Source of the DNA: Mobula hypostoma
Lineage: Eukaryota
NCBI RefSeq assembly: GCF_963921235.1
Contig: NW_026948178.1
Coordinates: forward strand, 372,001 to 436,000
Direction of reading: 5' to 3'
Length of the DNA: 64,000 nt
Under the pieces are notes generated by a model. The model saw only the letters and a program-made list of their open reading frames with translations, had not been told where the DNA came from and did no database searches. How positions within the stretch are numbered: the stretch's first letter is position 1; the number at the start of each line of letters is the position of its first letter. Positions 3,196-53,029 of the stretch are shown here, one piece after another. Both the position numbers and the translations under genes were made by a program.

Positions 3196-3239
3196 AACAG
3201 CACACAAGGTTTGATTCAGATCTGAGCAGAGTCCAGATT

Positions 3240-12909: not shown

Positions 12910-12940
<31 letters not shown>

Positions 12941-27727: not shown

Positions 27728-27813
27728 CTGGAACAGAAATACAGATTGTGCACTGTTTCTGTGATCGGAAATAGTGAATGGAAACTTATATAATGAGCGA
27801 CCTGCGTACCTAC

Positions 27814-31061: not shown

Positions 31062-32068
31062 TTATTCAGATTGGAGGTTTGTGACTCGTGGTGTCCCGCA
31101 AGGATTGGTTCCTGGACCTCTACTTTTCGTGATTTTTATTAACGACCTGGTTGTGGGGGTAGAAGGGTGGGTTGGCAAGTTTGCAGACGACACAAAGGTT
31201 GGTGGTGTTGTAGACAGTGTAGAGGATTGTCGAAGATTGCAGAGAGACATTGACAGGATGCAGAAGTGGGGTGAGAAGTGACAGATGGAGATCAACCCGG
31301 AGAAGTGTGAGGTGGTACACTTTGGAAGGACAAACTCCAAGGCAGAGTACAAAGTAAATGGCAGGATACTTGGTAGTATGGAGGAGTAGAGGGATCGAGG
31401 GGTACATGTCCACAGATCCCTGAAAGTTGCCTCACAGGTAGATAGGGTAGTTAAGAAAGCTTATGGGGTGTTAGCTTTCATAAATTGAGGGATACAGTTT
31501 AAGAGTCGTGGGGTAATGATACAGCTCTATAAAACTCTGGTTAGGCCACACTTGGAGTATTGTGTCCAGTTCTGGTCACCTCACTATAGGAAGGGTGTGG
31601 AAGCATTGGAAAGGGTACAGAGGAGATTTACCAGGATGCTGCCTGGTATAGAGAGTATGCATTATGATCAGAGGTTAAGGGAGCTAGGACTTTACTCTTT
31701 GGAGAGAAGAAGGATGAGAGGAGACATGATAGAAGTGTACAAGATAATAAGAGGAATAGATAGAGTGGATAGCCAGCGCCTCTTCCCCAGGGCACCACTG
31801 CTCAATACAAGAGGATATGGCTTTAAGGTAAAGGGTGGGAAGTTCAAGGGGGATATTAGAGGAAGGTTTTTTACTCAGAGAGTGGTTGGTGCGTGGAATG
31901 CACTGCCTGAGTCAGTGGTGGAGGCAGATACACTAGCGAAGTTTAAGAGACCACGAGACAGGTATATGGAGGAATTTAAGGTGGGGGGGGTTATACGGGA
32001 GGCAGGGTTTCAGGGTCAGTACAACATTGTTTGTTGAAGGGCCGGTACTGTGCTGTACTATTCTATGT
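31062..32068 (+). mobile_element. 5'-truncated CR1 nested in the LTR
   Basis: GVPQG, KFADD, LVRPHLEYC motifs, 3' tail. Confidence 0.9.
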
Positions 32069-33210: not shown

Positions 33211-33725
33211 TTATTATGCTGTTGGTCTTCTCTGTTTCTGTGTATTTATCACCTAATGGAATACAGCCGCTGACTTGCCTTTCTTTGTGAATGTATAACC
33301 ATGTGAGGCCAAGCAGAGATTCTCTCAGAAGGAGCTTAAAGCTGCTCACCCTTCCCACCGCCGATCCTTCAATGAGGACTGGTGTGTGTTCTCTCGACCT
33401 GTCCTCCGCGGAGTTCACAATCACATCTTGCTGTCTTTGTGTACAAGATTATTGCGGCGGCAACTCTCAACTCGTCTACCTATCCCGGAGGGAAGTAATT
33501 TTGAGGAAAATCCCACGTGATCTGGTGGAGGAAGACACCAGAGTATCGCGGGCCGAACGGCCTTCTGCTTCTTCAGTGTTATTGGTTGGTTCACTCTCCG
33601 CTCTCTCGCTCTGCGCTCCGATCAGCTCCGGCTTTTCAGGTAACGGGCTCCCGGGATCCGTCATGGAGACCAGGAAATGAGACTCACTCTCCGAATGTAA
33701 CAGAGACAGGCGCCGCTCTCTCGGG

Positions 33726-33777
33726 ATCGCGTGGACGACGCTCACTTTACTCTCTCTTTTACTCTTCATGTCTGTGG
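33726..33777 (+). pseudogene. Dead leader exon (ATG replaced by ATC) with degenerate promoter
   Basis: ATC GCG TGG ... GTG G|gtgata = IAWTTLTLLSLLLFMSV(G); same 52-nt length and the same upstream ...tgtaacagagacaggcgc.gctctctcggg context as the intact leaders. Confidence 0.65.
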
Positions 33778-33879
33778 GTGATAGAAACTCACTTTGAGAT
33801 CATTGTCGGATTCAACACAGCAGCAGATATTTGTAGAACAACACACAAGGTTTGATTCAGATCTGAGCAGAGTCCAGAT

Positions 33880-33997
33880 TCTCTGATCCAATCAGCGCTG
33901 CCGCCTGTGACGTCAGCATCCAATTATCTGACGCGCAAACCCGGAAGTGCGGCTCAGTCTCCGAGTGTAACAGAGATCGGCGCTGCTCTCTGTCGGG
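33880..33997 (+). promoter_or_regulatory. Promoter of upstream leader-N cassette (CCAAT, CRE, ETS)
   Basis: Near-identical copy of 3240-3356. Confidence 0.65.
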
Positions 33998-34049
33998 ATG
34001 TCGGGACTGCCCTTCGCAGCGCTCCTTCTGTGTCTCTGCATAACAGCCG
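33998..34049 (+). CDS. Leader exon of upstream cassette MSGLPFAALLLCLCITA(G)
   Basis: ATG 33998; donor G|gtaagg. Confidence 0.8.
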
Positions 34050-34251
34050 GTAAGGATCACTCTCTCTAACCAGTAGTGATCGTATAATCAACTGAACGAC
34101 GGGTAGTTAGGTGAATGAAGGTGACTTTATAATTATCGACCGTACTGAGCTAAGAACGGATCCCTGGTATCTGTACAGACTGAGTTAAGTGCAGTTTCTC
34201 ACGACTATCTGCGTCGGTCGCTTTTTCCTCATATGATTTTCTCGTTCTTAG

Positions 34252-34569
34252 GTCAGTCCCAGCAGTTTACTATTACCGTTGAGCACAGCCAGATAAATGT
34301 CCCCGTTGGGGGTGATGCGCTTTTTTCAGTGCGGCCGTCGTCCAAGGTCAGAAGTGGAGACTGGTCTGTTAATGGGATTTTAGCCGTCTGGTGGATCGAT
34401 CAGACCGTGTCTGTTGACAATGTTTACAAACCGCGGGCAGAGTTATTCACCTCCAATGGGTCGCTTCTGCTGAAATCGGTGAACGTGCGGGACAGCGGGG
34501 AATACCGTGTGAATATGGTTCCAGTCAGTGGCTCCCAAACCTCAGCGACCATCACTCTGCGTGTTATTG
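34252..34569 (+). CDS. IgV N-domain exon N2 (upstream cassette of gene B)
   Basis: Intact 318-nt exon, ttag/gtaagt; no constant exons of its own before the next cassette. Confidence 0.85.
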
Positions 34570-35047
34570 GTAAGTGAGACAGAGTTATACACAGTCATGC
34601 GATCTCGGACTGTAAATTTCATTTTATTCCTGTGGTGAAAGAATACAATATAACCATTACGGTATCGCAGAACCTGGACTCCAGTGAACTCTGCCAGACC
34701 TACTTTCGGACTGTTCAGTTCTCACTGTTGTGCGTGGCTGTTTATCGCCGTTTCTGTTCACTTGCCTGTGCCGTATGTCAGTTCGGTCTTTAACTCTATC
34801 AAGTAACTTTTTTTTGCTGTATTATACTATATTTTTGAAAACGGACTGTTTTTCAAGCAGCTGGAAATAATCAGTCGTAATCATCCACCTGAAAGTTTAA
34901 ATATGTTCCCCTCCCCAGTGCCGCCCACAAGTGAATGACAGTATATTGACAGCATTCTGTAGTTTTATCTCTGATCTGTGCATCTGTAGTATTTTGCTTC
35001 TTCCTGTAGTATACCTGTAGTATTTTTGCTTCTTTTTGCTTCAAAAG

Positions 35048-37932
35048 TCTTCTGAGGTGTATATATTTCAATGCTAGGAGTAATGCGGGGAAGGCGGGTG
35101 AGTTGAGAGCGTGGATTGACACGTGGAATTATGATATTATATCAATTAGTGAAACTTGGCTACAGGAGGGGCAGGACTGGCAGCTTAATATTCCAGGGTT
35201 CCGATGTTTCAGATGGGATCGAGGTAGAGGAATGAAAGGTGGGGGATTAGCATTGCTTGTTAGGGAAAATATTACAGCAGTTGTCAGGCTGGACAGATTA
35301 GAGGGCTTGTCTACTGAGTCTTTATGGGTGGAGCTGGGAAACAGGAAAGGTATGGCCACATTAGTGGGATTGTATTACAGAACACCCAATAGTCAATGAG
35401 AATTGGAAGAGCAAATCTGCAGAGAGATAGCAGGCAACTGCAGGAAACATAAAGTTCTGGTGGTAGGGGATTTTAATTTTCCATATATTGATTGGTTCTC
35501 CCATACCTTTAGAGATCTAGATGGTTTAGAGTTTGTAAAATGTATTCAGGAAAGTTTTCTAAATCAATATATAGAGGGACCAACTGGAGGGGATGCAATA
35601 TTGGATCTCCTGTTAGGAAACGAGTTAGGACAAGTGACAGAAGTCTGTGTAGGGGAGCACTTTGGTTCCAGTGATCATAACACCATTAAATTCAACTTGA
35701 TCATGGACAAGGATAGATCTGGTCCTAGGGTAGAGGTTCTTAACTGGAAGAAGGCCAGAATTGAAAAAAATGAGAAAGGATCTAAAAAGCGTGGTTTGGG
35801 ACAGGTTGTTCTCTGGCAAGGACGTGATCGGTAGGTGGGAAGCCTTCAAAGGAGAAATTCTGAGACTGCAGAATTTGTATGTTCCTGTCAGGATTAAAGG
35901 CAAAGTGAATAGGAATAAGGAACCTTTGTTCTTAAGGGATATTGCAACTCTGATAAAGAAGAAGAGGGAGTTGTATGACATGTATAAGAAACAGAGAGTA
36001 AATAAGGTGCTTGAGGAGTATAAGAAGTGCAAGAAAATACTTCAGAAAGTAATCAGGAGGGTAAAAGAAGACATGAGGTTGCATTGGCAGTCAAAGTGAA
36101 GGATAATCCAAAGAGCTTTTACAGGTATATTAAGAGCAAAAGGATTGTAAGGGATGAAATTGGTCCTCTTGAAGTTCAGAGTGGTCGGCTATGTGCGGAA
36201 CCAAAGGAAATGGGGGAGATATTAAATATCTTTTGCTTCTGTATTTACTAAGGAAACTGGCATGAAGTCTTTGGAATTAAGGGAAACAAGTAATGAGATC
36301 ATGGAGACTGTACAGATCGAAAAGGAGGAGGTCCTTGCTGTCGTGAGGAAAATTAAAGTGGATAAATCCCCGGGTCCTGACAGGGTGTTCCCTCGGACCT
36401 TGCAGGAGACTAGTCTTGAAATTGCAGGGGCCCTGGCAGAAATATTTAAAAAGTCGCTGTCTCTTCGTGAGGTGCTGGAGAGTTGGAGAGTGGCTCCTGT
36501 TGTTCCGTTGTTTGAAAAAGGATCGAAAAGTAATCCGGGAAATTATAGGCCAGTAAATTTAACGTCGATAGTAGGTAAGTTATTGGAGAGAGTACCAAAA
36601 GACAGAATCTACAAGCATTTGGATAGACAGGGACAAATTAGGGAGAGTCAACATGGCTTTGTGCGTGGTAGGTCATGTTTGACCAATGTATTGGAGTTTT
36701 TCGAGGAGGTTACCAGGAAAGTGGATGAAGGGAAGGCAGTGGATATTGTCTACATGGACTTCAGTAAGGCCTTTGACAAGGTCCCGCATGGGAGGTTCTT
36801 AAGGAAAATTCAGTCGCTAGGTATACATGGAGAGGTGGTAAATTGGATTAGACATTGGCTCAATGGAAAAAGCCAAAGAGTGGTAGTAGAGAATTGCTTC
36901 ACCGAGTGGAGGCCTGTGACTAGTGGTATGCTACAGGTATCAGTGCTGGGTCCCTTGTTATTTGTCATCTATATCAATGATTTGGATAATAATGTGGTAA
37001 ATTGGATCAGCAAATTTGCAGATGATACTAAGATTTGAGGTGTAGTAGACAGTGAGGAAAGTTTTCAGAGCCTGCAGAAGGACTTGGACCAGCTGGAAAA
37101 ATGGGCTGAAAATTGGCAGATGGAGTATAATACAGACAAGTGTGAGGTATTGCACGTTGGAAGGACAAACCAAGGTAGAACAAACAGGGTTAATGGTAAG
37201 GCACTGAGGAGTGCAGTGGAACAGAGGGATCTGGGAAAACAGATGCAAAATTCCCTCAAAGTGGCGTTACAGGTAGATAGGGTCGTAAAGTGAGCTTTTG
37301 GTACATTGGCCTTTATTAATTGAAGTATTGAGTATTAGAGCTGGATTGTTATGATGAGGTTGTACAAGGCATTGGTGAGGCCGAATCTGGAGTATTGTGT
37401 TCAGTTTTGGTCACCAAATTACAGGAAGTATATAAATAAGGTTGAAAGAGTGCAGAGAAGGTTTACAAGAATGTTGCCGGGACTTGAGAATCTCTGTTAC
37501 AGAGAAAGGTTGAAAATGTTATGACTTTATTCCCTGGAGCGTAGAAGAATGAGGGGAGATTTGATAGAGGTATATAAAATTATGATGGGTATTGTAAGAG
37601 TGAATGCAAGCAGGCTTTTTCCACTGAGGCAAGGGGAGAAAAAAAAAAGGACATGGGTTAAGGGTGAGGGGGGAAAAGTTTAAAGGGAACATTAGTGGGG
37701 CTTCTTAACACAGAGAGTGGTGGGAGTATGGAATGAGCTGCCAGACGAGGTGGTAAATGCGGGATCTTTTTTAACATTTAAGAATAAATTGGACAGATAC
37801 ATGGACGGGATGTTTATGCAGTGATATGGACCGTGTGCAGGTCAGTGGGACTAGGCAGACAATGGTTCGGCACAGCCAATAAGGGCCAAAAAGCTTGTTT
37901 CTGTGCTGTAGTTTCTATGGTTTCTATGGTTT
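35048..37932 (+). mobile_element. CR1 LINE, duplicate of 311-3195
   Basis: Same disabling mutations as the first copy. Confidence 0.95.
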
Positions 37933-37976
37933 AACAGCACACAAGGTTTGATTCAGATCTGAGCAGAGTCCAGATT

Positions 37977-38093
37977 CTCTGATCCAATCAGCGCTGCCGC
38001 TTGTGACGTCAGCATCCAATTATCTGACGCGCAAACCCGGAAGTGCGGCTCAGTCTCCGAGTGTAACAGAGATCGGCGCTGCTCTCTGTCGGG
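37977..38093 (+). promoter_or_regulatory. Promoter of gene B proximal cassette (CCAAT, CRE, ETS)
   Basis: Near-identical copy of 3240-3356. Confidence 0.65.
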
Positions 38094-38145
38094 ATGTCGG
38101 GACTGCCCTTCGCAGCGCTCCTTCTGTGTCTCTGCATAACGGCGG
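38094..38145 (+). CDS. Gene B leader exon MSGLPFAALLLCLCITA(G)
   Basis: ATG 38094; donor G|gtgagg. Confidence 0.85.
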
Positions 38146-41100
38146 GTGAGGATCACTCTCTCTAACCAGTAGTGATCGTATCATCAACAGAACGACGGGT
38201 AGTTAGGTGAATGAAGGTGATTTTATAATTATCGACCGTACTGAGCTGAGAACCGATCCCTGGTATCTGTACAGACTGAGTTAAGTGCAGTTTCTCACGA
38301 CTATCTGCGTCGGTCGCTTTTCCCTCATATGATTTTCTCTTTCTCAGGTGAGTCCCAGCAGTTTACTATTACCGTTGAGCACAGCCAGATAAATGTCCCC
38401 GTTGGGGGTGATGCGCTTTTTTCAGTACGGCCGTCGTCCATGGTCAGCAGGGGAGACTGGTCTGTTAATGGGATTTTAGCCGTCTGGTGGATCGATCAGA
38501 CCGTGTCTGTTGACAATGTTTACAAAACGCGGGCAGAGTTATTCACCTCCAATGGGTCGCTTCTGCTGAAATCGGTGAAAGTGCGGGACAGCGGGGAATA
38601 CCGTGTGAATATGATTCCAGTCAGTGGCTCCCAAAGCTCAGCGACCATCACTCTGCGTGTTATTGGTAAGTGAGACAGAGTTATACACAGTCATGCGATC
38701 TCGGACTGTAAATTTCATTTTATTCCTGTGGTGAAAGAATACAATATAACCATTACGGTATCGCAGAACCTGGACTCCAGTGAACTCTGCCAGACCTATT
38801 TTCGGACTGTTCAGTTCTCACTGTTTTGCGTGGCTGTGTATCGCCGTTTCTGTTTGCAGGTTCTCCGCACTTGTCTTTGCCGAATGTCAGTTCAGCTTTT
38901 AAGTCTACCAAATAACATTTTTTGCTGTATTATACTGTATTTTTTTTTAAACGGACTGTTTTTCAAGTCAGCTGGAAACGATCAGTTCTAAATCATCCAC
39001 CTGAAAGTTTAACGATGCGCCCCTCCCCGGTGCCGCCCACATGTCTATGAAAGTATATTGACAGCATTCTGTAGTTTTATCTCTCATCTGTGCATCGGTA
39101 GTATTTTACTTTAAGCGGAATGTATATTCTTGGAGCCATCATTTCAGCACAGTACGATACGCGTGATACATGGTATTAGTATTTTGACAGAAGCCGTATC
39201 CTGGCCCAACACCACATCAAATGCCGCTGGCTCTGTAGAACACAATGACACGGTCAGTGTCGCTTGCTCGGCAAGAGGGGGACATGCTCCTTATTCGTGG
39301 TTAATGAAAAGCAAGACAGTTAGCTCTGCCGTTAGGATTACGGTGAGCAGCACATCGACTGAACGTTTACTGCCAGTGTCGCTGTATTAGACCATGTGTC
39401 AAACATTGATTCTATTTTCAAAGGAAACTTCGAGGCTCCGACACCGAGCCGGGAGCACCCCCTCTGCCGAGTGGCTTATGTTCACATGTTCCACGGAACA
39501 ATTATGCTATAACCAAGTGCAATTCCGTTTATTCTGCTTTGATATTTGCTGCAGTGGGTAACCTCTGAGAGGAGAATATGTTGCTCACCGTCCCCTTAGT
39601 GAGTTCATTCCAGAGAAATCCATCAAACCAGAACGTGCTGCAGACGGGACGGGGTCAAACACGATTTGCCCCTTTTCGGCTGTATCCGACCCCTGTGGTC
39701 CTTTTACAATAATCTGGACAGCGTTGCATATTTGTCGATTTATCCCCATATTTTTATTTACGTGTGAGCATTTAACAATGCAAACCAACTATCCAGCTCA
39801 GTACACGAAATAATTTCTTCTAGGATACCGTTTGTATTATCCCCAGAGGTGGACAAAAAGTGTCTAACTTGCGTATCCATGAACACAGAGTTTATTTTTA
39901 TTTTTTTCAGTTATCAGCATCTGGTAAGGTGGAGTCCGGTGCTGAGTAAGATATTCTGATGTGTGTCATTACGCAGTACTGGGCTTGCAACGCATACTTT
40001 TAAGACGAACCCCAAATTATATCTAAAAGTTGCTGGTGAACGCAGGAGGCCAGGCGGCATCTCTAGGAAGAGGTGCAGTCGACGTTTCAGGCCGAGACCC
40101 TTCGTCAGGACTAACTGAAAGAAGAGTGAGTAAGGGATTTGAAAGTTGGAGCAGGAGGGGTGGGGGCCATGGAACTGAAAATCATCGAATTTTAAGTTCC
40201 CTGGCGCCCACCGCTTTATTTTCACCATGGATGTCCAGTCCCTATATACTTCCATCCCCCATCAGGAAGGTCTCAAAGCTCTACGCTTCTTGTTGGTTTC
40301 CAGCCCTAATCAGTTCCCCTCTACCACCACCCTGCTCCGTCTAGCGGAATTAGTCCTTACTCTTAATAATTTCTCCTTTGGCTCCTCCCACTTCCTCCAA
40401 ACTAAAGGTGTAGCTATGGGCACCCGTATGGGTCCTAGCTCTGCCTGCCTTTTTGTTGGCTTTGTGGAACAATCTATGTTCCGTGTCTATTCTGCTATCT
40501 GTCCCCCACTTTTCCTTCGCTACATCGATGACTGCATTGGCGCTGTTTCCTGCAGGCATGCAGAGCGCGTTGACTTTATTAACTTTGCCTCCAACTTTCA
40601 CCCTGCCCTCAAGTTTACCTGGTCCATTTCCGACACCTCCCTCCCCTTTCTAGATCTTTCTGTCTCTGTCTCTGGAGACAGCTTATCCACTGATGTCTAC
40701 TATAAGCCTACTGACTCTCACAGCTATCTGGACTATTCCTCTTCTCACCCTGTCTCTTGCAAAAACGCCATCCCCATCTCGCAATTCCTCCGTCTCCGCC
40801 GCATCTGCTCTCAGGATGAGGCTTTTCATTCTAGGAAGAGGGAGATGTCTTCCTTTTTTAAAGAAAGGGGCTTCCCTCCCTCCACTATCAACTCTGCTCT
40901 TAAAAGCATACTCCCCCATTTCACGTACATCTGGTCTCACTCCATCCTCCCGCCACCCCACTAGGAATAGGGTTCCCCTGGTCCTCACCTACCACCCCAC
41001 CAGCCTCCGGGTCCAACATATTATTCTCCATAACTTCCGCCACCTCCAACGGGATCCCACCACTAAGCACATCTATCGCTCCACCAATTTCTCTGCATTC

Positions 41101-44100
41101 CGCAGAGATCGCTCCCTACACAACTCCCTTGCCCATTCGTTCCCCCTCCCATCCCTCCCCACTGATCTCCCTCCTGGCACTTATCCGTGTAAGCGGAACA
41201 AGTGTTACACATGCCCTTACACTTCCTCCCTTACCACCATTCAGGGCCCCAAACAGTCCTTCCAGGTGAGGCATCACTTTACCTGTGAGTCGACTGGGGT
41301 GATAGACTGCGTCCGGTGCTTCCGATCTGGCCTCTTATATATTGCCGCAGACTGGGAGTCGTTTGCTGAACATCTACGCTCTGTCCGCCAGAGAAAGCAG
41401 GATCTCCCAGTGGCCAGACATTTTAATTCCACATCCCATTCACATTCTGACAGTTCTATCCACGGCCTCCTCTACTGTAAAGATGAAGCCACACTCAGGT
41501 TGGAGGAACAACACCTTATATTCCGACTGGGTAGCCTCCAACCTGATGGCATGAACATCGACTTCTCTAACTACCGCTAATGCCCCACCTCCCCCTCGTA
41601 CCCCACTGTTACTTATTTTTATACACACATTATTTCTCTCACTCTCCTTTTTCTCCCTCTGTCCCTCTGAATATACCCCTTGCTCATCCTCTGGATCCTC
41701 CCCCCCCCCCCCCGCCACCTCCTTGCCTTTCTTCCCGGACCTCCTGTCCCATGATCCTCTCGTATCCCTTTTGCCTATCACCTGTCCAGCTCTTGGCTCT
41801 ATCCCTTCCCCTCCTGTCTTCTCCTATCATTTTGGATCCCCCCTCCCCCTCCCACTTTCAAATCCCTTACTCACTCTTCCTTCAGTTAGTCCTGACGTAG
41901 GGTCTCGGCCTGAAACGTCGACTGCACCTCTTCATAGAGATGCTGCCTGGCCTGCTGCGTTCACCAGCAACTTTTATGTGTGTTGGTTGAATTTCCAGCA
42001 TCTGCAGAATTCCTGTTGTTCCCAAATTATATCTGTTCCGTCTCGTGTGATAACAATTTCCATTGGCTCCAAAACATTAACATTAACACTGAACTTTGGA
42101 TCATTTCAGTAGCGATAGATTCTCTGGATGATATTAGAAACTGTTGTCAGTATTTCTGTTCTGTGTTTGCCAGTGATTATGCATCATCTTTCTCATTGCC
42201 AAGTGACCCTTGCCTGAAGTGAATCATTTCCTACTTCCTCCTTCACGAGCTCCATTGATTTGCCATTTTTGTCGGGTTTGTTTTTGACATATGCAATTTC
42301 AAAACGCCATGGCGTCGCAGATTAAAACAGAGAGACAATATGGTTAATCTTCAACATCATGATCATAATGTAAGTCCTTCATCCTGAAGCCGCAAGCGGT
42401 CCAGAAAATGATTCACAATCGTCCAACTGGAATGGGAGTCTCTTGAACTTAGGAGGGTGGTTCGACCGAGACCTTACTCTCCGAGCGTGGCAGGTCGTGG
42501 CATGATCATACAGAAGTTTCTAAAATCACGAAAGGCACAAGTAATTTCGATGTTCACCTATTTTAGCAGGCTACAGTGGTCTAAAATAAAGAACTTAGAT
42601 TCATAGCTAGTGAGGTAAAGTAAAAGGGACAGCCTTATGCACAATGTGTTCCGCAAATGCTAGGAACTGCCAAAGGGAATGCTGGAGATGCGTGGAAATA
42701 TAATGTTCAGAAATCATGTAGACAACAGAAGTATATAACAGTTTATACATGGTCCAGTTGCAGGCAAATGGGAATAGTTCAACGAAATAGCTTGGTCAGC
42801 ATGAACGAGATCGGCAGAAGGGTCCTTGAGGCGATGAATGATATGGCTACACCTGAAGGGAGAGAATTTCAACATACTGTCTCTGAGTAAGCGATGAATA
42901 AAGAATGAAGTCACTTGTCTCAATTCTAGTGTCTCCATCTCAATCCTTAACTCAATCAAGTGGAATTATTTGTTAATGTTTACTTATTATGGAGAATAAT
43001 GATTTTATTTTAAGATTCAGAACAGAAGCCATAAACTGCCGGATTCTATTCCTGGGTCGTTCATTAACTTCTCCTGTCTGTTTTAACAGAACCTGTTTCC
43101 AATGTCACCGTAACATCTAATGCCACCAGACTGATAGAGTACAATGACACCGTCACTCTAACCTGCCTCGCAAGAGGCACGGCAGTCTCTTACCTGTGGC
43201 TTGAGGAGAATAGCATGATAATTCCTGGCGGCAGGATTGAACTAAGTGCGGACAACAGCACACTTATTGTTTCTGGAGTGCTACGGACAGACGGAACTTT
43301 CACCTGCAGAGCAAACAACCTGATTATTGAAATCACAAGCGCTCCGTTTTCTCTCGATGTCAACTGTAAGCACCCCGAGAGTTCCGTAGTAACACATAAT
43401 ATTACAGGTCGCGCTAGATACAGGGTTCCGGGAGTGTGTGATTATATCATTGAACGTTACATCAATGGACTAACACCGGAACAACTGAACAGTTAATTGG
43501 GAGACGGATCGGGGTCTATCGATATGCTTATGAGTGATGTGCATTGTATCCAGGTTGGAGAAGGAGACGGGTTTGGGGATAGGAGGTAACTGTGCATAGT
43601 TTCTTAAAACGTGTTTAATCTGACACTGTGACCTGACTCCCCTATTTACCGCGGGTGGCTTCCAGACCAATGCCGCCGTCGTTGTGTGGGAGCACTTTCT
43701 CTGCTGGTGGGCTGTTCTTCCTCTCGCGGCAAGAGGAATCCGTTTTGTCCGTTTCATTTCAGACGGACCGGATCGTCCACATATCATCACTGAACCGGAC
43801 TCTACTCTTCACGTTGCCGGAAGCAGCGTATCGTTAACATGTTTCACACTGTCGCACCCAGACGCTGAACTGAATTGGCAACTGAACGGTGCCCATCTCC
43901 AAAGTGGGCAGCTTCTCATCCTCGACAACATCTCTGTGAGCCAGACGGGAAGGTATACTTGTGAGGCTTATAACATGCTTACAATGAAGAAAAATTCCTC
44001 AACCAGGGAAATTGATGTTTACGGTAGGTAGTCTGCTCCTCCCTTTGTTGAGGTCGTATATAGCGGCGTTGGTGCAGCCAGGGCAGTGTAATTGAACTGA

Positions 44101-47100
44101 ATGCCTAAACCCGATTAGAATATTGACTAACAACCTTAATCCACAACGGTGAACATTGATGAAACAGAGTATTGATTAAGAGGCAAATCGGAATTGTTTT
44201 GACTTGTCGATTAAACTACAAATATTTACTTGCTGCAGTTAGGACCATAAGGCCATAAGGCATAGGCAGGAGATTTAGACAACTGGGCAATGGAGTCTGC
44301 TCCGCCATTTCATCGTGGTTAATCTAATATTCCTCACAGTTCCAATTACTGTACAAGCCTTCTCTGCATATGCATTGATGCACTGACCAATCAAGAATCT
44401 ATCATCCTCTCTTTACACTTACGGAAGGACATGGCCTCTACAGCTTCCCATGAAACATAATTTCCAGATTGACCACCCTCAGGCGAAATAAATTCCCTTT
44501 CGTCTCCGTTCTAAAAGGACGCCACTCTATTTAAAAGGTGTGCCTTTTGGTTTTAAACTCACCGCCATGGGAAACATCCTCTCCACATCCACTCTAATAA
44601 GGCCTTTCACAATTCGATAGGTCTCATGACGTCACCCCATATTCTTCTGATTTCCAGTCGGCAGAGGCCCAAAACCATCAAACACTCTGCTTATGAAAAG
44701 TTGTTCAATCCTGTTCATTCCACGAACTCACCACTCTCTGCGTAAAAAAAAACAAAAAAAAAACTTACGCCTGAGATCTCCTCTGTACCTACTCGCCAGC
44801 ACCTTAACCCTGCGCGCTCCTGTGGCAGCCATTTCAGCCCTGGAAAAATTCTCTGATTATCCACAGGATCGATTGCTCTCATCATCTGAGACTCCTCTAT
44901 CAGGTCACCTCTCATCCTCCGTCACTCCAAGGAGAAAAGGCCGAGTTTACTCCACCTATTCTCATAACGGGTTCTCCACGATCCAGGCAATATCCTTGTA
45001 AATCTCATCTGCCCCCTTTCTATGGCGGTCACATCCCTTCTATAGTGAAACAACCAGAACTAAACACAGCACCGCAAGTGGGGTCTGAAGAGGAACCTAT
45101 ATAGCTGCAACATTACCTCCCGGCTTCTAAATTCGATTCCACGATTAATGAAGGCCAATACAATGCATTCTCAACCACAGAGGTGACCTGAGCAGCTGCT
45201 TTGAGCGTCCTATCGTCTCGGACCCCAAGATCCCCCTGATCCTCCACACTGCCAAGAGTCTTACCATTAATACCGCATTCTGCCTTCATATTTGATCTAC
45301 CAAAATGAACCACTTCACGCTTATCTGTGTTGAACTCCGTCTGCCAGTTCTCCGCACAGTTTTCCATCCTACCAATGCTCTTCTGTAACTTCCGACAGCT
45401 CTCCACACTATCCACAACTCCCCCAACCTTTGTGACATCAGCTAACTTACTAACCCAACCCTCCGCTTCCTCATCCAGGTCATGTATGAACATCACGTAG
45501 AGTAAGAGTCCCAGAACGGATCCCCGAGGCACCTCACTGGTCACCGACCTCCAGGCAGAATATGAACCGTCTACGAACACGCTTTGTCTCATGTGCGCAA
45601 GCAGGTTCTGGATCCACGAAGCATGTACATGTTGCAGATCAAAGCAAGTGTAAAAGTGTTTGCATTTAATTGTATTTACAGAGCCGGTGACCGGTGTTAC
45701 TGTGGTGGCCAATGATTCCACTCCCCTGGAAAATCTTGATACCATCGCACTGAGTTGTGACGCGTCGGGCCCTGTTCAGGCCCGGGCATGGTTCAAGGAT
45801 AACCAACCCATCCAGGAAAACAACAGAATATTTACATCATCCGGGAAGGCGAAACTGATTATAATCAGTGTTTACAGAAACGACGCAGGGACGTACAAGT
45901 GCATCGCCAGCAACTCTTTCAGCAGTGGCTCTGGAGAGACCTACGTGCAAGTTTACTGTAAGTACTCAGTAAATCAACCGCGTTCATTTGTATCCGATAT
46001 TACATTTATCAAGATATGTAATCATTGTGGGGCGACCACATAAGAACGGAATATCCCGGATCCAGCGAGATATCACTCTAATCAGCATTTTTTTTTTTTC
46101 ATTTTAGATGGACCAGAGATGATCAGAATTGTACCGGAGCGTCCAGTTGTGTCCAATACTGTGTCAAACCTGACATTAACTTGCTTTGCTCTGTCAGTCC
46201 CCTGGGGCATATATGTATGGTACAACGGGAACAATCTCCTGCAGACAGGGCAGGAACTCCGTCTTTTGTCAGCCAGAATGGTTGACGTTGGGAGTTATAC
46301 ATGTCGGGTTACTAACCGCGTAACCAACAGGAACAGTAACCTTACTGTCCATGTCACCGCAGAAGGTGAGTGAATGTGTCTCTTATTCGTCCATGTAAAC
46401 CCGATGGTCAAAGATCCAAACCATTTCCCTCTCACGCCCTCCTCACGCCGTACCTTCATTCCCCCTTCCAAATTGCTTATCAGAGAGAATAATAATTGAT
46501 TTAAAGAGATTAAATATCGAGAGCAGCGACCAGAACTTTCGGGAGTTTCTAAAAAAAAAGATGAGTTTTCGCCATGTACAATATATGCTTGTTTTCTGTG
46601 TTAGCACCAAAAACAGATGACAATATCACCCTCACCGCCGGCGCGATCGTGGGCATTGTACTTGGTTTACTTGGCATGGGCCTGATCGGGGGAGTCACTG
46701 GATGGTTCATCGCAAGGAAAACGAGCGGGTAAACTCATCGCTCTCCGAATCTCGTTTCTACCTTTAATTATTTCATATAAACATAGAAACGTAGAAACCT
46801 ACAACACAAAACAGGCCTATCGGCCCGTGAAGAAATTACTAGACATCCCCATATCCCTCTATTTTACTGAGCTTCATGTACCTATCTAAAAGCCCCTTAA
46901 AAGACCAGATCTTATCCGCCTCCAACACCATTGCCGGCAGCCCCTTCCACGCACTCACCACACTCTGAGTAAAAAAAACTTACCTGTAATATCTCCTCTG
47001 TACCTATTCCCCAACACCTTAAACTTGTGTTCACTTGTTTCAACCATTTCAGCCTTGAGAAAGAGCCTCTGACTATCCACACGGTCAGTGCCTCTCATCA

Positions 47101-50100
47101 TCTTATCAGGTCACCTCTCATCCTCCGTCGCTCTAAGGAGAAAAGGCAGAGTTCACTCAAACTATTCTCATAAGGCATCCTCCCTATTCCAGCCAACATC
47201 CTTGTACACCTCCTCTGCACCCTTTCTGTGGCTTCCACATCCTTCCTCTAGTGAGGCGACCAGAACTGAGCACAGTACTCCAAGTTTGGTTTGCCCAGGG
47301 TTCTATATAGCTGCAACATTACCACTCGGGTCCTAAATTCAATTCCACGACTAATGAAGGTCAATACACCGTGTGCCTTCTTAACAACAGTGTCAAGCGG
47401 CGTAGCTGCTTTGAGCGTCCTATGGACTCGGACCCCAAGATCCCTCTGATCCTCCACACTGCCAAGAGTCTTACCATTAATACTATATTCTGCCATCAGA
47501 TTTGCCCTACCAAAACCAGATTTTTTGAGGATTTCGGCAGAACCGACTTCTGCCCGGATCCGGGATCATCTGTGGGCAGAATCAGCATTCCGCCTTCACG
47601 GTGACGTTCTTTGTCTGAAATCTGAACATCTGTCTGAAAGAGGCCTGTGTTCAGCAAGATTTCTGTAAACAGCATATATGTCAAAAAGGGCCAAAGCAAT
47701 TTTCTTTCCTTTACGAATTATGGTCACTGTTGTTGTGATCGAGTAGGGCTGGAATCCGGCGTCCAATAACCAGAACAGTATCAAGGAATAACAAGAGAGT
47801 ATCCAATGCAATTGTAGGAGCCGTTCTCATTCAGTGTATCCGTGCAGGAAAGTGACTTCCTGCCGAATCCATGTTTTGACCTTTGTTTCTGTTTATTCAG
47901 GATCAAAGATCCACCACAATCCAAATCCGGAAGGAAGAGTGAGTGAACTGCATTTGAAATTTTCTAACTTGGAGCCAATGGAAATCTTAACATTGATTTT
48001 AATTTGGGAGCTCATAGTGCACGGCATTGACAGAGTGGATGTGACAAAGTTGTTTCCCATGATGGGGGAGTCTAGTACGAGAGGGCATGACTTAAGGATT
48101 GAATGGAGCCGATTCAGAACAGAAATACGAAGATTTTTTTTTAGTCTGAGGGTGGCGAATCTATGGAATTTGTTGCCACGGGCAGCAGTGGAGGCCAAAT
48201 CATTGGGGAGTGGGACAAAAGGGGAGAATGGATCAGTTCATGGAAAAATGGCGGAGCAGACTCGATGGGCCGAATGGCCGTCTTCTGCTCCTTTGTCCTA
48301 TGGTCTTATGGAATATGGAGGTTTTCATCAGAGCGAATGGTCACGAATTACGCGACTTTTGTCGTGGAGTTTTCCATTTATATAAGGTGAAATTTTCTGC
48401 TCAAGATTAGAATATCAGCGGAGAGATGGGATAGCAGTTTATACAACGTAATTTCTCTTCATATTGATCAATATCGGTCCTCACTTCCTGGTTCTGGCGA
48501 TTGGTGGGACGGAAGCTCATGCTATCAATGGCGTTTTGTTTTGGGCCGGATTGACGTCTGCTGTGTTCAACAACGGCTCCTGCCGCTCTGCACCGTTGTC
48601 ACATATCTGTTTGGTTCCCACAGGCACCTTGGATACAAATACCGTGAACACACCGCAAAACTATGAGAATTTCCCCAGGAATGAACAGGTAGGGTGGTCA
48701 TGATCTCCGTCATGGTTTTGCCCAGGGACGATAAGAACACGAGTAATGCGACCGGTAGCGTCCATCGGGCCTTTCCGCTCTGATTGGTCATTTAATAAGA
48801 TCATGGTTCATCGATGTCGGATCTCATTGTCAGTTAATGGAGAAACAACACATCATATTCTGCAAAGTAAACCCAATCCTGATGGTATGAACATCGACCT
48901 TATCCCACCGGTATTTCTTTTCACCTCCGTCTTCTTCTATTGTCACTCTGGCCTCTTATCCCTTCTCCTTATCTGCCCATCATCTCCCCCTGGTGCCCCT
49001 CCTTCTTCCCTTTCTCCTATGGCACACTCGCCTCTGCAATCCGACTACTTTTTCTTCATCTTCCCTTGTCCCACCCGTCAGGCCTCACCTATCAGCTCCC
49101 AGCCAGGCCCCCTTCCCCTCGCCACCATTTTGTTCAGGCGTCTTCCTGCCTCCTTCTCAGCCCAGTAGATGTGTATCGTCACAAAACCTAAACGGATTAA
49201 TAAATTCTATTAATGCTGCCTGACACTCTGAGTTCCTTCGGCATTTTGTGCGTGTTGCTCTGATTTTCCAGCACCTGCAGAATTTCCACAGTATACCCCA
49301 GAATCTATTATACCTGTAAGATGCAAAAACATATCCGACCTTTGCTGCAACATTTTTCATGAAAGAGTCTTTTATAACGTCCGATCAATGTGAGTAACGC
49401 CGGAGACTCCACAATCACTCACAGAGTGAAGCCGTGGTCAGGTTTGCACATTTCTGTCTCTGATCAACAGTGATCTCTGTGAGCGTTCAAGAGAAACAGC
49501 AGCTTACGGTGAACAGCCTGAGGCCACGAGTCCGCATTCTGATCCAGACTTACCTGTCAAGATGAATGGCTTTCAATCCGCCGAGTGAACGTTCTGATCC
49601 AGACAAATCTCTCAGAAGGAATGGTTTTAAAGGCAAATTACTCCTCAAATAATATTCACCACGCTCCATGGTGACTGAATATTGACGAATGGTTTAATGA
49701 CATTCAGTAACATTGCTGACGTTGGGGAAAATGTATATTGCACTCGCTCTGAATCAGAAACTCGCAGAGCATCGAACGGTGACCGATACAATTTCGCTCC
49801 AAGCAGCAACGACTGTGACCATTGATACCCTCCGGGTTTATATGTGCAGAGTCAGAATACAATTGTTGTTCACTTGTTTAAACGTCATGATAAAAAAACG
49901 CCTTTTTCTCTTTGCAGGGCGCAAGTCACAATGCACAAGACGAAAACTCCACTTACATGGTATATGCGTCAATCTCTCATTGAAGTAATTGTTTCCATTT
50001 CATTGAGTAAGAAATAGACCCTGAAGTGAGACGTTCCATAGACTGCAGTGTTGAGCACAACATTAATATGTCAGTGTCAGGATACGAAAGTGATTGCGGT

Positions 50101-52222
50101 CACTATAATAAGGGGCAGTGTCATGGGAAGCTGAAAGGGAGGAAGGTAGAAGAGTCAACTGGACTAAATGGACGAGATGAGCTACACACTAGGGTTCTGA
50201 AATGGGCCGCTGAAGAGGGAGTGGAGGAATTAGCACTGATATTCCAAGCCTCACGTCACTATTGAATTGTTTTGAAGGACTGCAAAGTTGCAAATATCAC
50301 TACGCTCTTTACGAGGAAAGGGGCTGAACTGACAGGATGGGGTAAGACTGCACGATAAAAGAGGAGGTTTGAGGATAGATGGAGGCACGAGATAAAACGG
50401 GTGGCAGGCAGGAATGTTTTGCCCCTGCGAAAATCCTGCCTGGCAATGCTGTTGGAATTCTTGGAGGAAATCACATGTGCGATCGACAAAAGAGAGTCAG
50501 AGGGAGTTGTGCACTTGGATTTTCAGACGGCCTTTGACAAGGTAACGCACATCAGGCCACTGAACATAAGAGCGCATGGTATTACATGGCAGAAGACAGC
50601 ATGCACAGAGGTTTGTCCGACCGGAAGGAAGGGAAGAGTGGGATTGAATGGGATAGTTGTGTGTTGGGCTGCCGAATTGGGCTACCAGTGCGGTTCTGCT
50701 GGTGTCGGTGTTCGGCCGCTTCTTCCCGTGTTTCCAGTCAATGAGATCGACAAATGAGCTGGTGGATGTGTGGTCAGGCTTGGGGACGATGCAAAGATAG
50801 TTGTAGGGGGTGTGCAGGACTTAGGAAGCTGCGGGTCTGCAGAAGGAGTTGGAACAATGAGGGAAACAGAGAAACAACTGCAACTAAAATCCAGTGCATG
50901 GAAGCATTAGTTCGTGCTCTTTGACAGGCGTGAAGCCGGAGCCTATTTTCCGAAAGGGATTGAACTTACAAATCGGAGGTGAAAATGCCCTATGCAGTTG
51001 TAGTGCAAGGTTGCTGAAAGTCGAACTTTCAGGTTGCGTTAGTGATAAGGAAGGAAGGCAAGTGCATTGTTGTCCATCATTTTGACAGGTATCGAACACA
51101 AACGTGAAAGATATTGAAGGGATTTGTCAGAGAAGACTCAGAATATTTTGAAGAGTGTTGAAGACCTTTTCTTAGAAAGGACAGGGTGGCTTTGGAGGAA
51201 ATTAACGAGAATTATCTAAGGAGTGAAAGCGTTTAACGACTCTGAGTTCTCTACCCACTGTAGTTTGGCAGAATGACTTATTTGAAACATACTTATCGCG
51301 GGAGTGTCTCAGACCAAAGGGCACAGCCTGAGAGTACAATGAACGCCCTTTGGAACGGAGAGATAAGAAGGAATATCTTTAGACAGAGCGTGTTTTATCT
51401 GCGCTATTTATTGTCGCTTATGGCTGTGGAGGCCAATGTACTCTGTTATGAAGCGTTGATCGCGCCGAATGTTGCAGAGTGAAGGCGGGTGAATGGGGTT
51501 GAGAGTGACAGTAAATCGGACATGATAAAATGAGGGAGCGGGCTCCATGTCAGGAATTGATTAAACCTTCCCCTGCGTCTTCTCCTGGAGACTCATGGAA
51601 GTCTCGTTCCTCCCTCAATTTTCAATAACTACGTGTCTCAGAAAATCCTCTTTCCATCATGTTCTGGCTGATCCGCGGTTCTTTCAAAGCGAGATCGTTA
51701 AATACGGGCAGGTCCTTTCCAATATTCCTCCAATTCTCCTCTACCATGTCCTGATTTTGATAATATTTTTTGTTAATGCTGACGATTTCCTCACGTTAAC
51801 AGGAACTTAATCTGGGCGATCGATCTGTTTACAGTGATCTGAAGAGGTAAGTGAACAGAACATCCGGCTCTCGATGTAAAATGTTACCTACAAAAGAAAC
51901 ATATCGATAATGTTCAAGACTGTGAGTCGTGCAGGATATGTGATCGTTCCCGTGCACATATCACATTGTGATTAGCAATATACATAGATGTAACAGTGTA
52001 CGACTGGAATCAGGAGGCGTTGAGAGGCGATATATTGATAATCAAACGAACAATTTTCGTGGGGCCGTGGTCATATGAAACATGTAAATTGTATGCAAGG
52101 TTGCTTTGTCACGATGTTTGACACGGATTGAGAAAACACCGCTCGTCTTTCTCCTCACCAACAGCAACTCCTTCGGGTTGCCTGCGGAGTCAACATGAGT
52201 TGTGTATTGTTTCCGCAGGTGA
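38094..52222 (+). CDS. CEACAM-like receptor gene B (leader, N, A1-B1-A2-B2 IgC2, TM, ITAM tail; 585 aa; spliced)
   Basis: Exons 38094-38145, 38348-38665, 43090-43365, 43763-44023, 45682-45957, 46108-46365, 46605-46728, 47901-47938, 48624-48688, 49918-49959, 51803-51846, 52219-52222. GT-AG, consistent phases, 1758 nt open frame. Cys-less IgV followed by alternating EPV.../YGP... IgC2 exons is the CEACAM pattern. Confidence 0.88.
38348..38665 (+). CDS. Gene B IgV N-domain exon N3
   Basis: ctcag/gtaagt, 318 nt, Cys-less V-set, DSGEY. Confidence 0.9.
39191..39390 (+). pseudogene. Degenerate A-type IgC exon in gene B intron 2
   Basis: Copy of 4452-4651; retains the C-strand Trp (YSWL) but ends at the same stop. 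Confidence 0.7.
40020..42020 (+). mobile_element. Penelope-like element (RT plus GIY-YIG remnant) with inverted partial terminal repeat
   Basis: RT YIDD ORF 40227-40964; GVIDCVRC..SGLLYI (GIY-YIG-like) ...PDGMNIDF; 40020-40165 is an inverted copy of about 41840-41985. Confidence 0.9.
43090..43365 (+). CDS. Gene B IgC2 exon A1
   Basis: EPVSNVTVTSN...TLTC...YLW...TFTCRANN...LDVN; ttaacag/gtaagc; 276 nt. Confidence 0.9.
43763..44023 (+). CDS. Gene B IgC2 exon B1
   Basis: YGPDRPHI...SLTC...LNWQLNG...TGRYTCEAYN; tttcag/gtaggt; 261 nt. Confidence 0.9.
44245..45620 (-). mobile_element. Two adjacent CR1 fragments in gene B intron 4
   Basis: Minus ORFs with VPRGSVLG, KLADV, MRGDLIE; (CCATAAG)n tail at 44245. 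Confidence 0.85.
45682..45957 (+). CDS. Gene B IgC2 exon A2
   Basis: EPVTGVTV...LSCDASG...WFKDN...DAGTYKCIASN; tttacag/gtaagt; 276 nt. Confidence 0.9.
46108..46365 (+). CDS. Gene B IgC2 exon B2
   Basis: YGPEMIRI...LTLTC...YVWYNG...GSYTCRVTN; ttttag/gtgagt; 258 nt. Confidence 0.9.
46605..46728 (+). CDS. Gene B transmembrane exon
   Basis: (A)PKTDDNITLTAGAIVGIVLGLLGMGLIGGVTGWFIARKTS(G); ttag/gtaaac. Confidence 0.88.
46780..47510 (-). mobile_element. CR1 3' fragment
   Basis: DLGVRVHRTLK...LEYCAQFWSPH on minus; tail at 46780. Confidence 0.85.
47901..47938 (+). CDS. Gene B cytoplasmic exon 1 (IKDPPQSKSGRK)
   Basis: ttattcag/gtgagt; 18 nt shorter than the gene A exon, in frame. Confidence 0.8.
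48025..48310 (+). mobile_element. Short CR1 3' end, gene B-specific
   Basis: DRVDVTKLFP...TRGHDLRI; absent at the matching gene A position (about 12310). Confidence 0.75.
48624..48688 (+). CDS. Gene B cytoplasmic exon 2 (STLDTNTVNTPQNYENFPRNEQ)
   Basis: cccacag/gtaggg; 65 nt. Confidence 0.8.
49918..49959 (+). CDS. Gene B cytoplasmic exon 3 (GASHNAQDENSTYM)
   Basis: tttgcag/gtatat; 42 nt. Confidence 0.8.
50110..51570 (+). mobile_element. Old degraded CR1 (5' part shared with gene A about 17220-17440)
   Basis: KSCLAMLLEFLEEIT...HLDFQTAFDKV. Confidence 0.75.
51803..51846 (+). CDS. Gene B cytoplasmic exon 4 (ELNLGDRSVYSDLKR)
   Basis: ttaacag/gtaagt; 44 nt; terminal exon cag|G TGA at 52219-52222. 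Confidence 0.8.
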
Positions 52223-53029
52223 CGTCACTGGTGAATGGAAGAGGATGGTCGGGACGTGGACGGACACATCAGAAAGACAACCATCCAGGATGTTTACTGA
52301 AAACCTCTCTGACTATTTCTTTGCCATTCTTAATTCATATCTCCGTTAGATTTCTTCTGCGCGCTCACAGCTTGACGCCGGAGACATCACTGAAGATTTT
52401 GACTGATTTGCATCATAGAAGCTGAGTTCTCTCACCTCAAGCCAGACTCCTACATCCGATACTTGGCACCGTCACACTGCCACAGGCAGCTGCCCTCTCG
52501 ACATTTTGGTGCGATATACTCTCTATAAACTCTTCATCCACATCATGGACAGGTGTTTTTTGAAGTTTCCTGCTACCAAACAATAGATTTCGCTCACTGA
52601 ATACCGCGTCAGCTTCCGAGTATTCCCGTCCCACCTTCACGAAGTGTCACGGAGGCAGGAGCTCATTCGGGCTGAGTGGTGGCGATACGAGCACGGGCAG
52701 GAGAAGTGATTTCCCAATGATTTGAAGATACATACTCAGCGTTAGCGCTTGGTAAATGACTAGCAAATCAACATTGTTTATTTGTTCTTCATTTTCGATC
52801 AAGGAGTAATGTAAAGAATGATAAGGCATTGCTGTGAGCAAAGAATTATCAAATCCTGGCCTGGACCATGAACGTGAAAAGAGCATTGATATCGCGATGA
52901 CATAAGAACATAAGAAATAGGAGAAGGAGTTATCCATCCGGCCCACTGAGCCTGCCCCGCCATTCAATCACATCAAGACCTTTTGCCATCCCTGATTCGG
53001 AGTACTAGGAGTTGCTGTGTGTTTCATTT

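Follow-up and report, generated by a model that had tools for sequence, protein, structure and literature searches.

A tandem of leader–N cassettes separated by a LINE in an ITAM receptor gene of the CEACAM family from the devil ray Mobula hypostoma

Tandem N exons are an already known feature of the CEACAM/PSG family, and in rodent PSG genes they are found in series, from N1 to N3. Repeated 5′ units are also present in clustered protocadherin and UGT1A genes, where a variable unit consists of one first exon that lacks a splice acceptor; for this reason the downstream units are skipped and exactly one unit is used. In Xenopus, CEACAM genes with multiple N exons have been described (PMC5112662). 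The N exons of the family evolve fast, with gene conversion, and in bovine CEACAMs the conversion starts at the leader exon and reaches ~1 kb beyond the N exon (PMC7042247). Direct tandem duplication bridged by a LINE is likewise a published mechanism, characterised for human L1 in cancer genomes (PMC7058536). With regard to sharks and rays, the annotation of many species includes CEACAM-like models that have several N domains and an ITAM-type tail, for instance with four N domains in M. birostris, an N-N-A2-B2-TM order in Hemitrygon, five N domains in the white shark and six in the basking shark; no description of such receptors was found in the CEACAM literature searched.

The window considered here is a stretch of 64,000 nucleotides from an unplaced 667-kb scaffold of the devil ray Mobula hypostoma, which is rich in near-identical paralogs. 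The favoured reading, to which a probability of roughly 0.72 is given, is that a LINE-made duplication of the 5′ module left a gene in which a start at the first leader yields a two-N receptor and a start at the second leader a one-N receptor, with the tail in common.

Anatomy of the locus

Gene B is a CEACAM-family ITAM receptor gene, with all the features described below on the forward strand. Its sequence, splice sites and open reading frames show two leader–N cassettes followed by a single set of IgC, TM and ITAM exons. Both cassettes, proposed in a first-pass annotation made from the sequence alone, were recovered with their leader exons, N exons and splice sites, and each is part of a block, block X, whose copies at 33837-34999 and 37933-39111 are 94% identical over 1180 bp in a self-BLAST, far above chance. 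The upstream copy (1.17 kb), also supported by the alignment of the copies and by an RNA joint at 34049>34252, comprises a 5′ flank with a putative promoter (33837-33997), the leader exon L1 (33998-34049; 52 nt, that is 17 codons plus 1 nt, with a GT donor), intron 1 and the N2 exon (34252-34569; 318 nt, Cys-less and IgV-like, bounded by AG and GT, phase 1-1), and ends with 430 bp of intron 2. The downstream copy contains the corresponding flank (37933-38093), the leader exon L2 (38094-38145), intron 1, the N3 exon (38348-38665) and the proximal part of intron 2; the N3 acceptor is strong, with an AG preceded by a pyrimidine tract.

The putative promoter flank carries CCAAT, TGACGTCA and CCGGAAGTG motifs. 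The two flanks are nearly identical, with 2 differences in 161 bp, and extra promoter constraint is not evident from a comparison with intron 1 (2/161 vs 9/202, p=0.12). As had been noted from the sequence, N2 is intact and unlike N3, from which it differs by 9 nt and 8 aa. The ratio of nonsynonymous to synonymous differences is 8:1 (pN/pS ~2.6); this ratio, drawn from 9 differences, is not significantly off neutral (binomial ~0.3, hand estimate) and does not warrant a claim of positive selection. Immediately upstream, alignment identifies a relic partial cassette (33655-33836) made of a diverged 5′UTR, a leader homolog and the start of its intron. The relic leader, at ~33735-33786, is a 52-nt homolog in which ATG has become ATC and the GT donor is kept. 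The cassette count at gene B is thus two, plus one dead relic leader.

The upstream cassette has no constant exons of its own: a LINE alone lies between the cassettes, and no Ig exon was found there. The single constant set further downstream is common to both cassettes and all its exons are bounded by GT-AG, in agreement with the earlier annotation. It is preceded by a pseudo A-type IgC exon (39191-39390) with a good acceptor and an in-frame TAG after 66 codons, which is skipped in the four RefSeq isoforms retrieved (X1, X3, X4 and X5). The A1 IgC2 exon (43090-43365) is intact, with phase 1-1, and absent from the same four isoforms. The B1 exon (43763-44023) starts with YGPD and has an internal acceptor at 43862 that is used by isoform X3. 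After it come the A2 IgC2 exon (45682-45957), the B2 IgC2 exon (46108-46365) and the TM exon (46605-46728). Four cytoplasmic exons follow (47901-51850), at 47901-47938, 48624-48688 (YENF), 49918-49959 (ending in STYM) and 51803-51850 (ELNLGDRSVYSDLKR, stop), and the last intron, between the last two of these, divides a canonical ITAM, YMEL-x7-YSDL.

The family assignment rests on several features. N2 and N3 are devoid of Cys and carry an R...DSGEY motif, and their Pfam V-set score is 24 bits, just below the 26-bit cut-off; the IgC exons match Ig_2, Ig_3 and I-set above the cut-off. The IgC2 domains alternate between A and B types, with one exon each, all in phase 1, and the B type starting with YGPD or YGPE. 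Furthermore, the gene has the split leader, N exon, TM exon and small cytoplasmic exons with an ITAM that are expected of a CEACAM. Most named protein matches are labelled CEACAM/PSG-like, these labels deriving from NCBI automatic naming.

The LINE between the copies and later homogenisation

The element between the block X copies (35043-37932) is a 5′-truncated and decayed CR1-like LINE, with endonuclease and reverse transcriptase ORF fragments (Pfam Exo_endo_phos, RVT_1), a 3′ end made of two GTTTCTATG units and a very high repeat depth in contigs. Contigs of the LINE family part from the locus sequence upstream of 35043, where a filler of 43 nt (35000-35042) is built up from incomplete repeats of CTGTAGTATTTTGCTTC, the neighbouring target motif. 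The LINE exactly fills the space that separates the copies: its 5′ end, with the filler, adjoins the end of the upstream copy (34999/35000) and its 3′ end the start of the downstream copy (37932/37933), the abutment being within a few bases. This exact fit points to a LINE-bridged tandem duplication, and the 5′ tandem was probably made by one aberrant retrotransposon integration. In such an event, the 3′ end of the CR1-like element would have joined at the present 37932/37933 and its truncated 5′ end at a point 1.17 kb further downstream, which probably lay on the sister chromatid; the outcome would be an X-LINE-X order. The duplicated module would run from the 5′ flank through the leader exon, intron 1 and the N exon into the first 430 bp of intron 2. 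Two other origins were considered and rejected. A LINE arriving by chance after the tandem duplication would have had a probability of ~0.4% of landing ~5 bp or less from the junction, and 3′ transduction by a LINE does not account for an upstream copy that is preceded by no LINE sequence and ends, tail-less, against the 5′ end of the LINE.

The copies differ at 25/924 positions (2.7%) in their 5′ part, 33837-34760, and at 29/238 (12%) in the distal part of intron 2 (p=3e-8 for the contrast). To judge from this distribution, gene conversion appears to have homogenised the 5′ 0.9 kb of the copies after the duplication.

A second paralog, gene A, has its 5′ module at 1-6140, with the end of an upstream block X, the LINE, a downstream cassette (leader 3357-3408, N exon 3610-3927), the pseudo-A exon, as a relic at ~4475-4612, and a second retroelement. 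Window positions 1-5025 match 34738-39767 at 98.9%, so gene A also has the cassette-LINE-cassette layout that the first-pass annotation had suspected; its 5′ module is also 93% identical to 40176-41302. The protein XP_062895386.1 (P0152) is 98-100% identical to the N, TM and cytoplasmic exons of gene A in tblastn. The 5′ modules of A and B are 98.9% identical versus 66-78% for the TM/cytoplasmic halves, and the whole 5′ module seems to have been copied between the two paralogs later. The CEACAM1-like gene of ITIM type (P0012) is found on a different contig, one of chromosome scale, and encodes an N domain that shares just 82% identity with N2.

Isoforms, RNA evidence and other readings

In-silico splicing of the window exons reproduces four RefSeq isoforms residue for residue, namely X1 (XP_062895393.1), X3 (XP_062895395.1), X4 (XP_062895396.1) and X5 (XP_062895397.1); this is the set analysed, and no protein cluster contained isoform X2 of gene B. 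In the RefSeq models X1, X3 and X4, L1 is the first exon and N3 follows N2 as an internal second N, before the constant exons, whereas in X5 (P0266, rebuilt exactly) L2 is the first coding exon and N3 the sole N domain. These exon orders indicate that an upstream start gives a two-N receptor and a downstream start a one-N receptor, and suggest that, as modelled, the choice of start site decides which N domain is at the tip. A transcript starting upstream would be spliced as L1>N2>N3>constant, with N2 at the tip; L2 would be ignored because it is of first-exon type, without an acceptor, and N3 would be included because its acceptor is a normal one. A transcript starting downstream would be spliced as L2>N3>constant, with N3 at the tip, and both forms would share the same IgC2 domains, TM segment and ITAM tail. 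The earlier proposal of an N2-N3 tandem is therefore encoded by X1, X3 and X4. Its suggestion that promoter choice gives N2- or N3-tipped receptors holds for the tip in the RefSeq models; the four isoforms include no N2-only product.

At the RNA level, the cassette at 33998, on whose transcription the first-pass annotation had staked its proposal in advance, is transcribed: the L1>N2 splice (34049>34252, GT..AG) was found in contigs of RNA run X1 only. The L2>N3 splice (38145>38348, GT..AG) was found in RNA runs X1 and X3, and both joints are absent in DNA run X9. An N2-type RNA contig covers 34255-34517 with 1 mismatch. The N2>N3 junction of the RefSeq models, which presumably has an RNA basis, was not seen among the RNA joints listed (15/37), and a search of a 5.8-billion-protein collection with N2 as query, for peptides across N>N or N>constant junctions, returned annotated short proteins only. 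RNA coverage in run X1 drops to zero over the pseudo-A exon, with none from 39237. An alternative poly(A) signal (AATAAA/ATTAAA) that might account for this stop was looked for after the N exons, and none was found in 34570-35100, 38666-39500 or 3929-4760. One RNA contig of run X1 over 33837-33972 extends a further 233 nt upstream, over the relic cassette, with 3 mismatches; since it crosses the putative upstream promoter, at least some transcripts, possibly of a paralog, start further upstream.

In RNA run X1, contig depth is ~180 for N2-type sequence versus ~40-70 for N3, a measure that is not quantitative and to which near-identical paralog cassettes may contribute. If N3 were part of every N2 transcript, a greater depth for N2 than for N3 would not be expected.

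Three other readings bear on this evidence. The upstream cassette might be a by-product of the LINE without productive output, kept intact-looking by conversion, with RNAs that are unspliced or end in the LINE and with two-N isoforms that are prediction artefacts. The conversion tract over 33837-34760 would fit this, as would the unspliced contigs found, for both cassettes, over intron 1 and the proximal part of intron 2 (e.g. 34541-34741 and 34712-34969), the missing N2>N3 joint and the near-neutral 8:1 ratio. However, the L1>N2 joint does occur in RNA, where the contig of the N2-type exon is also abundant, L1-N2-N3 is common to three distinct RefSeq isoforms, and the N-N-A2-B2-TM order recurs in Hemitrygon akajei, with a four-N version in M. 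birostris, which makes a mere by-product unlikely.

Rather more doubtful is the notion of a variable-cassette system, where promoter choice picks one cassette and its N exon is joined directly to the constant exons, the outcome being a single-N receptor with either N2 or N3. Both cassettes are intact and their 5′ flanks nearly identical, all junctions are in phase 1, with an open frame of 585 aa for L1-N2-A1 and onwards, and the depth difference in run X1 would fit some skipping of N3. On the other hand, the N3 acceptor is strong, N3 is present in each of the three retrieved isoforms with L1 as their first exon, and an N2-only form is not among the four; moreover, the cassettes are only two in number and the relatives are annotated with serial N domains. 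An assembly artefact, in which the 4.1-kb tandem and perhaps the similarity of A and B would stem from mis-joined paralogs or haplotigs, might be suspected on an unplaced scaffold full of near-identical paralogs, with no DNA contig across the LINE junctions among those listed, but it is highly improbable given that the layout occurs twice in the window with a 1.1% divergence that indicates distinct copies, that the block X copies are 12% apart in distal intron 2 and thus not collapsed alleles, that no DNA joint 34999>39112 is among the joints listed, and that multi-N genes are found in the assemblies of other species.

Significance and comparison with known systems

Under the favoured reading, a LINE-made duplication with start-dependent output, the locus would be a clean germline case of a single retrotransposon integration duplicating a putative promoter-bearing exon module. 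Through that event, an immune receptor would have acquired one more ligand-binding domain along with another start site, which suggests a specific way for the multi-N CEACAM receptors in shark and ray annotations to have arisen. It poses the testable question of whether the choice of start switches between two forms, an N2-tipped receptor with two N domains and an N3-tipped receptor with a single one. It does not amount to a new diversification principle on the level of protocadherin promoter choice or V(D)J recombination.

More tentatively, 5′ duplications of this kind, bridged by retroelements or similar, might repeatedly have added promoter-leader-N cassettes to the CEACAM ITAM receptors of elasmobranchs, an idea of N-domain accretion that is possible rather than probable. 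With each new cassette the tip would be taken over by a new N domain and the former tip would become internal, retained internal starts would produce nested isoforms with 1 to n N domains and one signalling tail, and old leaders would decay, as the dead ATC leader at ~33735-33786 may have done. If true, this would explain the receptors with three to six N domains annotated in sharks and rays, and promoter choice would control both the identity of the tip and the length of the ectodomain, for example to counter pathogen adhesins.

As in the cancer genome cases (PMC7058536), a lone LINE lies exactly between direct copies, with its 3′ end at the primary site and its truncated 5′ end further downstream. 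Those events are somatic, involve L1 and span megabases, whereas the event in the ray would be germline, fixed, 1.17 kb long and CR1-like. Genes A (N-TM-ITAM) and B (N-N-IgC-TM-ITAM) resemble paired receptors of the CEACAM1/CEACAM3 type in having alike 5′ modules and old, diverged 3′ halves, and in conversion tracts that begin at the leader exon and extend past the N exon into the next intron; unlike in such pairs, both genes of the window encode an ITAM.

The ray locus is like the clustered protocadherin and UGT1A genes in that its 5′ units are repeated, may each have a promoter and precede constant exons common to all, as in a variable-first-exon gene. The analogy, drawn in the first-pass annotation, does not extend to exclusive choice, because the units are not acceptor-less: N3, as an internal exon, has a normal acceptor and follows N2 in the RefSeq models X1, X3 and X4. 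The ray unit is a leader plus an internal N exon, the downstream N is added in series, and there are two units only.

The closest likeness is to the rodent PSG and Xenopus multi-N genes of the same family, where IgV-like N exons of phase 1-1 are also joined N to N within one gene. Unlike in those genes, the duplicated unit in the ray includes the 5′ flank and the leader, so that a start cassette of its own remains in front of the internal N, and RefSeq models a one-N isoform that begins there; and whereas PSG is secreted, the ray product is a TM/ITAM receptor.

Tandem cassettes and a shared constant module

Gene B, the CEACAM-like ITAM receptor gene under study, contains two blocks (33837-34999 and 37933-39111) that share 94% identity over 1180 bp, as determined by self-BLAST of the window and subsequent alignment. 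Each block includes a 5' flank of about 160 bp, a 52-nt leader exon ending at a GT donor (L1, 33998-34049, upstream; L2, 38094-38145, downstream), a 202-nt intron 1 and a 318-nt, phase 1-1 N exon encoding a Cys-less IgV-like domain (N2, 34252-34569; N3, 38348-38665). No Ig-like sequence was found in the interval separating the blocks. Self-BLAST, exon structure and translation thus show that the two tandem cassettes reported in the first-pass annotation are real. The constant module that it had assigned to both cassettes also stands, since a single set of such exons lies 3' of both: the GT-AG, phase-1 IgC2 exons A1 (43090-43365), B1 (43763-44023), A2 (45682-45957) and B2 (46108-46365), the TM exon at 46605-46728 and four small cytoplasmic exons (47901-47938, 48624-48688, 49918-49959 and 51803-51850). 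YENF lies in the tail, as does a canonical ITAM (YMEL-x7-YSDL) that the last intron interrupts.

N2 served as the query of an exhaustive HMMER search which, together with cluster look-ups, led to Mobula hypostoma RefSeq proteins encoded on a 667,102-bp scaffold of GCA_963921235.1. In-silico splicing of the window exons reproduces four of them residue for residue: isoforms X1 (XP_062895393.1, 599 aa, L1-N2-N3-B1-A2-B2-TM-cyt), X3 (XP_062895395.1, 566 aa, the same chain with a partial B1 from an acceptor at 43862), X4 (XP_062895396.1, 512 aa, L1-N2-N3-A2-B2-TM-cyt) and X5 (XP_062895397.1, 493 aa, L2-N3-B1-A2-B2-TM-cyt). The N2-N3 tandem that had been envisaged, with an upstream start, is therefore already in the public annotation (isoforms X1, X3 and X4), as is an N3-only form with a downstream start (X5), and the start site sets the tip of the receptor as suggested, N2 in the three L1 models and N3 in the L2 model. 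None of the four retrieved isoforms of gene B is an N2-only product, and isoform X2 was not found in the protein-cluster look-ups. Gene A, the paralog at the 5' end of the window, corresponds to LOC134341460; its protein (XP_062895386.1) has 233 aa and is built as L-N-TM-ITAM. As both genes have an ITAM, they do not form an inhibitory/activating pair.

In gene B, A1 is an intact phase 1-1 exon, yet it is used by none of the four isoforms; XP_062895373.1, a near-identical paralog encoded on the same scaffold, includes its A1. A decayed A-type IgC exon, pseudo-A (39191-39390), lies 80 bp 3' of the duplicated block; its acceptor is good and its frame is interrupted by a TAG after 66 codons. It is skipped by isoforms X1, X3, X4 and X5, and its gene A counterpart is at about 4475-4612. 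The intron separating pseudo-A from A1 harbours a fragment of a second retroelement (40179-41577), whose RT domain (RVT_1) scores below cut-off; the fragment is common to genes A (5023-6140) and B with 93% identity. On the minus strand between the two genes, A/B-type IgC2 exon homologs at 27537-29127, 33-41% identical to A2 and B2 of gene B, may represent another CEACAM-like gene or a relic. A 1-kb inverted repeat (31064-32068 versus 62336-63338, 92.6% identity), with related copies at 22244-22598, is probably a dispersed repeat.

Start-site choice and RNA evidence

The leader exon is a first exon devoid of an acceptor and the N exon offers a strong one, so that L2 is predicted to be skipped and N3 included in a transcript from the upstream start. 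Such a transcript would encode a two-N receptor with N2 as its membrane-distal tip, and the downstream start a one-N receptor with N3 at the tip, both with the same variably spliced IgC2 stalk, TM segment and ITAM. Most likely, the alternative start drives an N-terminal extension and not a mutually exclusive cassette choice. The main analogy of the first-pass annotation, a variable-cassette system, is consequently wrong, given the strong N3 acceptor and the serial arrangement of the cassettes in the models.

For the region 33837-39836, contigs were mapped from four sequencing runs of the same species, three putatively RNA and one DNA. The GT..AG joint 34049>34252 was found in run X1 and 38145>38348 in runs X1 and X3, and neither in the DNA run, so that these runs are RNA and splicing removes both leader-N introns. 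Word depth in run X1 was high for an N2-type contig (34255-34517, one mismatch). No N2>N3 joint appears among the 15 joints listed out of 37. Another run X1 contig, which has three mismatches, covers 33837-33972 and extends 233 nt further upstream, so that at least one copy of the 160-bp flank, a putative promoter, is transcribed.

Some contigs are unspliced; these span intron 1 of the downstream cassette (38121-38376) and, in both cassettes, proximal intron 2. Coverage in run X1 dwindles to zero by about 39236, with none from 39237, over pseudo-A, and the DNA run goes on; a search for canonical poly(A) signals in the regions of unspliced RNA coverage past the N exons gave none. Contigs of run X1 cross both N-exon donors into intron 2 (34570-34969 and 38666-39236), fading within about 500 nt, and such read-through would append Gly-Lys and a stop to the N domain, with a secreted leader-N product as a possible outcome. 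In run X13, a 1503-nt RNA contig mapped at 34312-34566 has an N exon unlike all three in the window, resembling the gene A type most closely (A>G at 34395), and 1248 nt more of non-N sequence; its probable source is another N-TM-ITAM paralog, for example LOC134341456.

Origin and homogenisation of the blocks

The 2.9 kb separating the blocks is a decayed plus-strand LINE with endonuclease and RT ORF fragments. Its 3' end, two copies of GTTTCTATG followed by GTTT, directly adjoins the downstream block (37932/37933), and from this terminal repeat we take the element to be CR1-like. Similarity to other genomic LINE copies begins at 35043, and 35000-35042 is filler composed of partial repeats of the adjoining target motif. 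Two direct copies bridged exactly by one LINE are the hallmark of LINE-bridged tandem duplication, in which the cDNA becomes linked to a second, downstream break on the sister chromatid (PMC7058536), and the arrangement of block, LINE and block points to this origin. An older tandem duplication with a LINE inserted later at its junction has a chance of about 0.4% from position alone. Directly upstream lies a diverged dead partial cassette (33655-33836). It comprises a stretch resembling 5'UTR, a leader homolog of 52 nt in which ATG has become ATC, and a GT donor, and it may reflect an earlier round of 5' duplication. A run X1 RNA contig appears to run over this relic.

The divergence of the two blocks is uneven along their length, with 2/161 differences in the 5' flank, 2/52 in the leader exon, 9/202 in intron 1, 9/318 in the N exon, 3/191 in proximal intron 2 and 29/238 in distal intron 2 (pooled, 25/924 in the 5' part versus 29/238 distally, p=3e-8). 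Since introns are homogenised as well, the 5' part is a gene-conversion tract and not the product of purifying selection. N2 and N3 differ at eight amino acids, with 8 nonsynonymous to 1 synonymous changes, too few for a selection test. In gene A, the downstream cassette is mosaic: it resembles the upstream cassette of gene B from intron 1 to where the N exon ends, and it bears changes of its own clustered in the C-C' region. The 5' module common to both genes (block end, LINE, block, pseudo-A and second retroelement; 1-6140 versus 34738-41302) is 98.9% identical, and 93% further on, whereas the TM and cytoplasmic halves (8851-18794 versus 46557-52802) share only 66-78%; the module has thus moved recently between old paralogs. 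In CEACAM genes, documented conversion starts at the leader exon and reaches about 1 kb past the N exon (PMC7042247; PMC5112662).

Serial N domains in other species

The gene models themselves are already public; the present analysis contributes the proposed LINE-bridged origin, the history of conversion and module transfer, and a mechanistic reason for serial cassette use. The CEACAM literature searched mentions cartilaginous fish just in passing. In the protein searches, many annotated CEACAM-like proteins of elasmobranchs had N domains in series, with three in whale shark and horn shark, four in zebra shark and cloudy catshark, five in white shark and six in basking shark. Among rays, M. 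birostris has an annotated L-N-N-N-N-A2-B2-TM-ITAM chain, Hemitrygon akajei N-N-A2-B2-TM and also a 4-N model, and M. hypostoma a 4-N model, named titin-like, on the same scaffold as gene B. In a Pristis pectinata model, 5'UTR and leader are translated as coding sequence between a partial and a full N, which suggests that a leader-bearing cassette lies 3' of an N exon there too. Multi-N CEACAM genes have likewise been described in Xenopus (PMC5112662).
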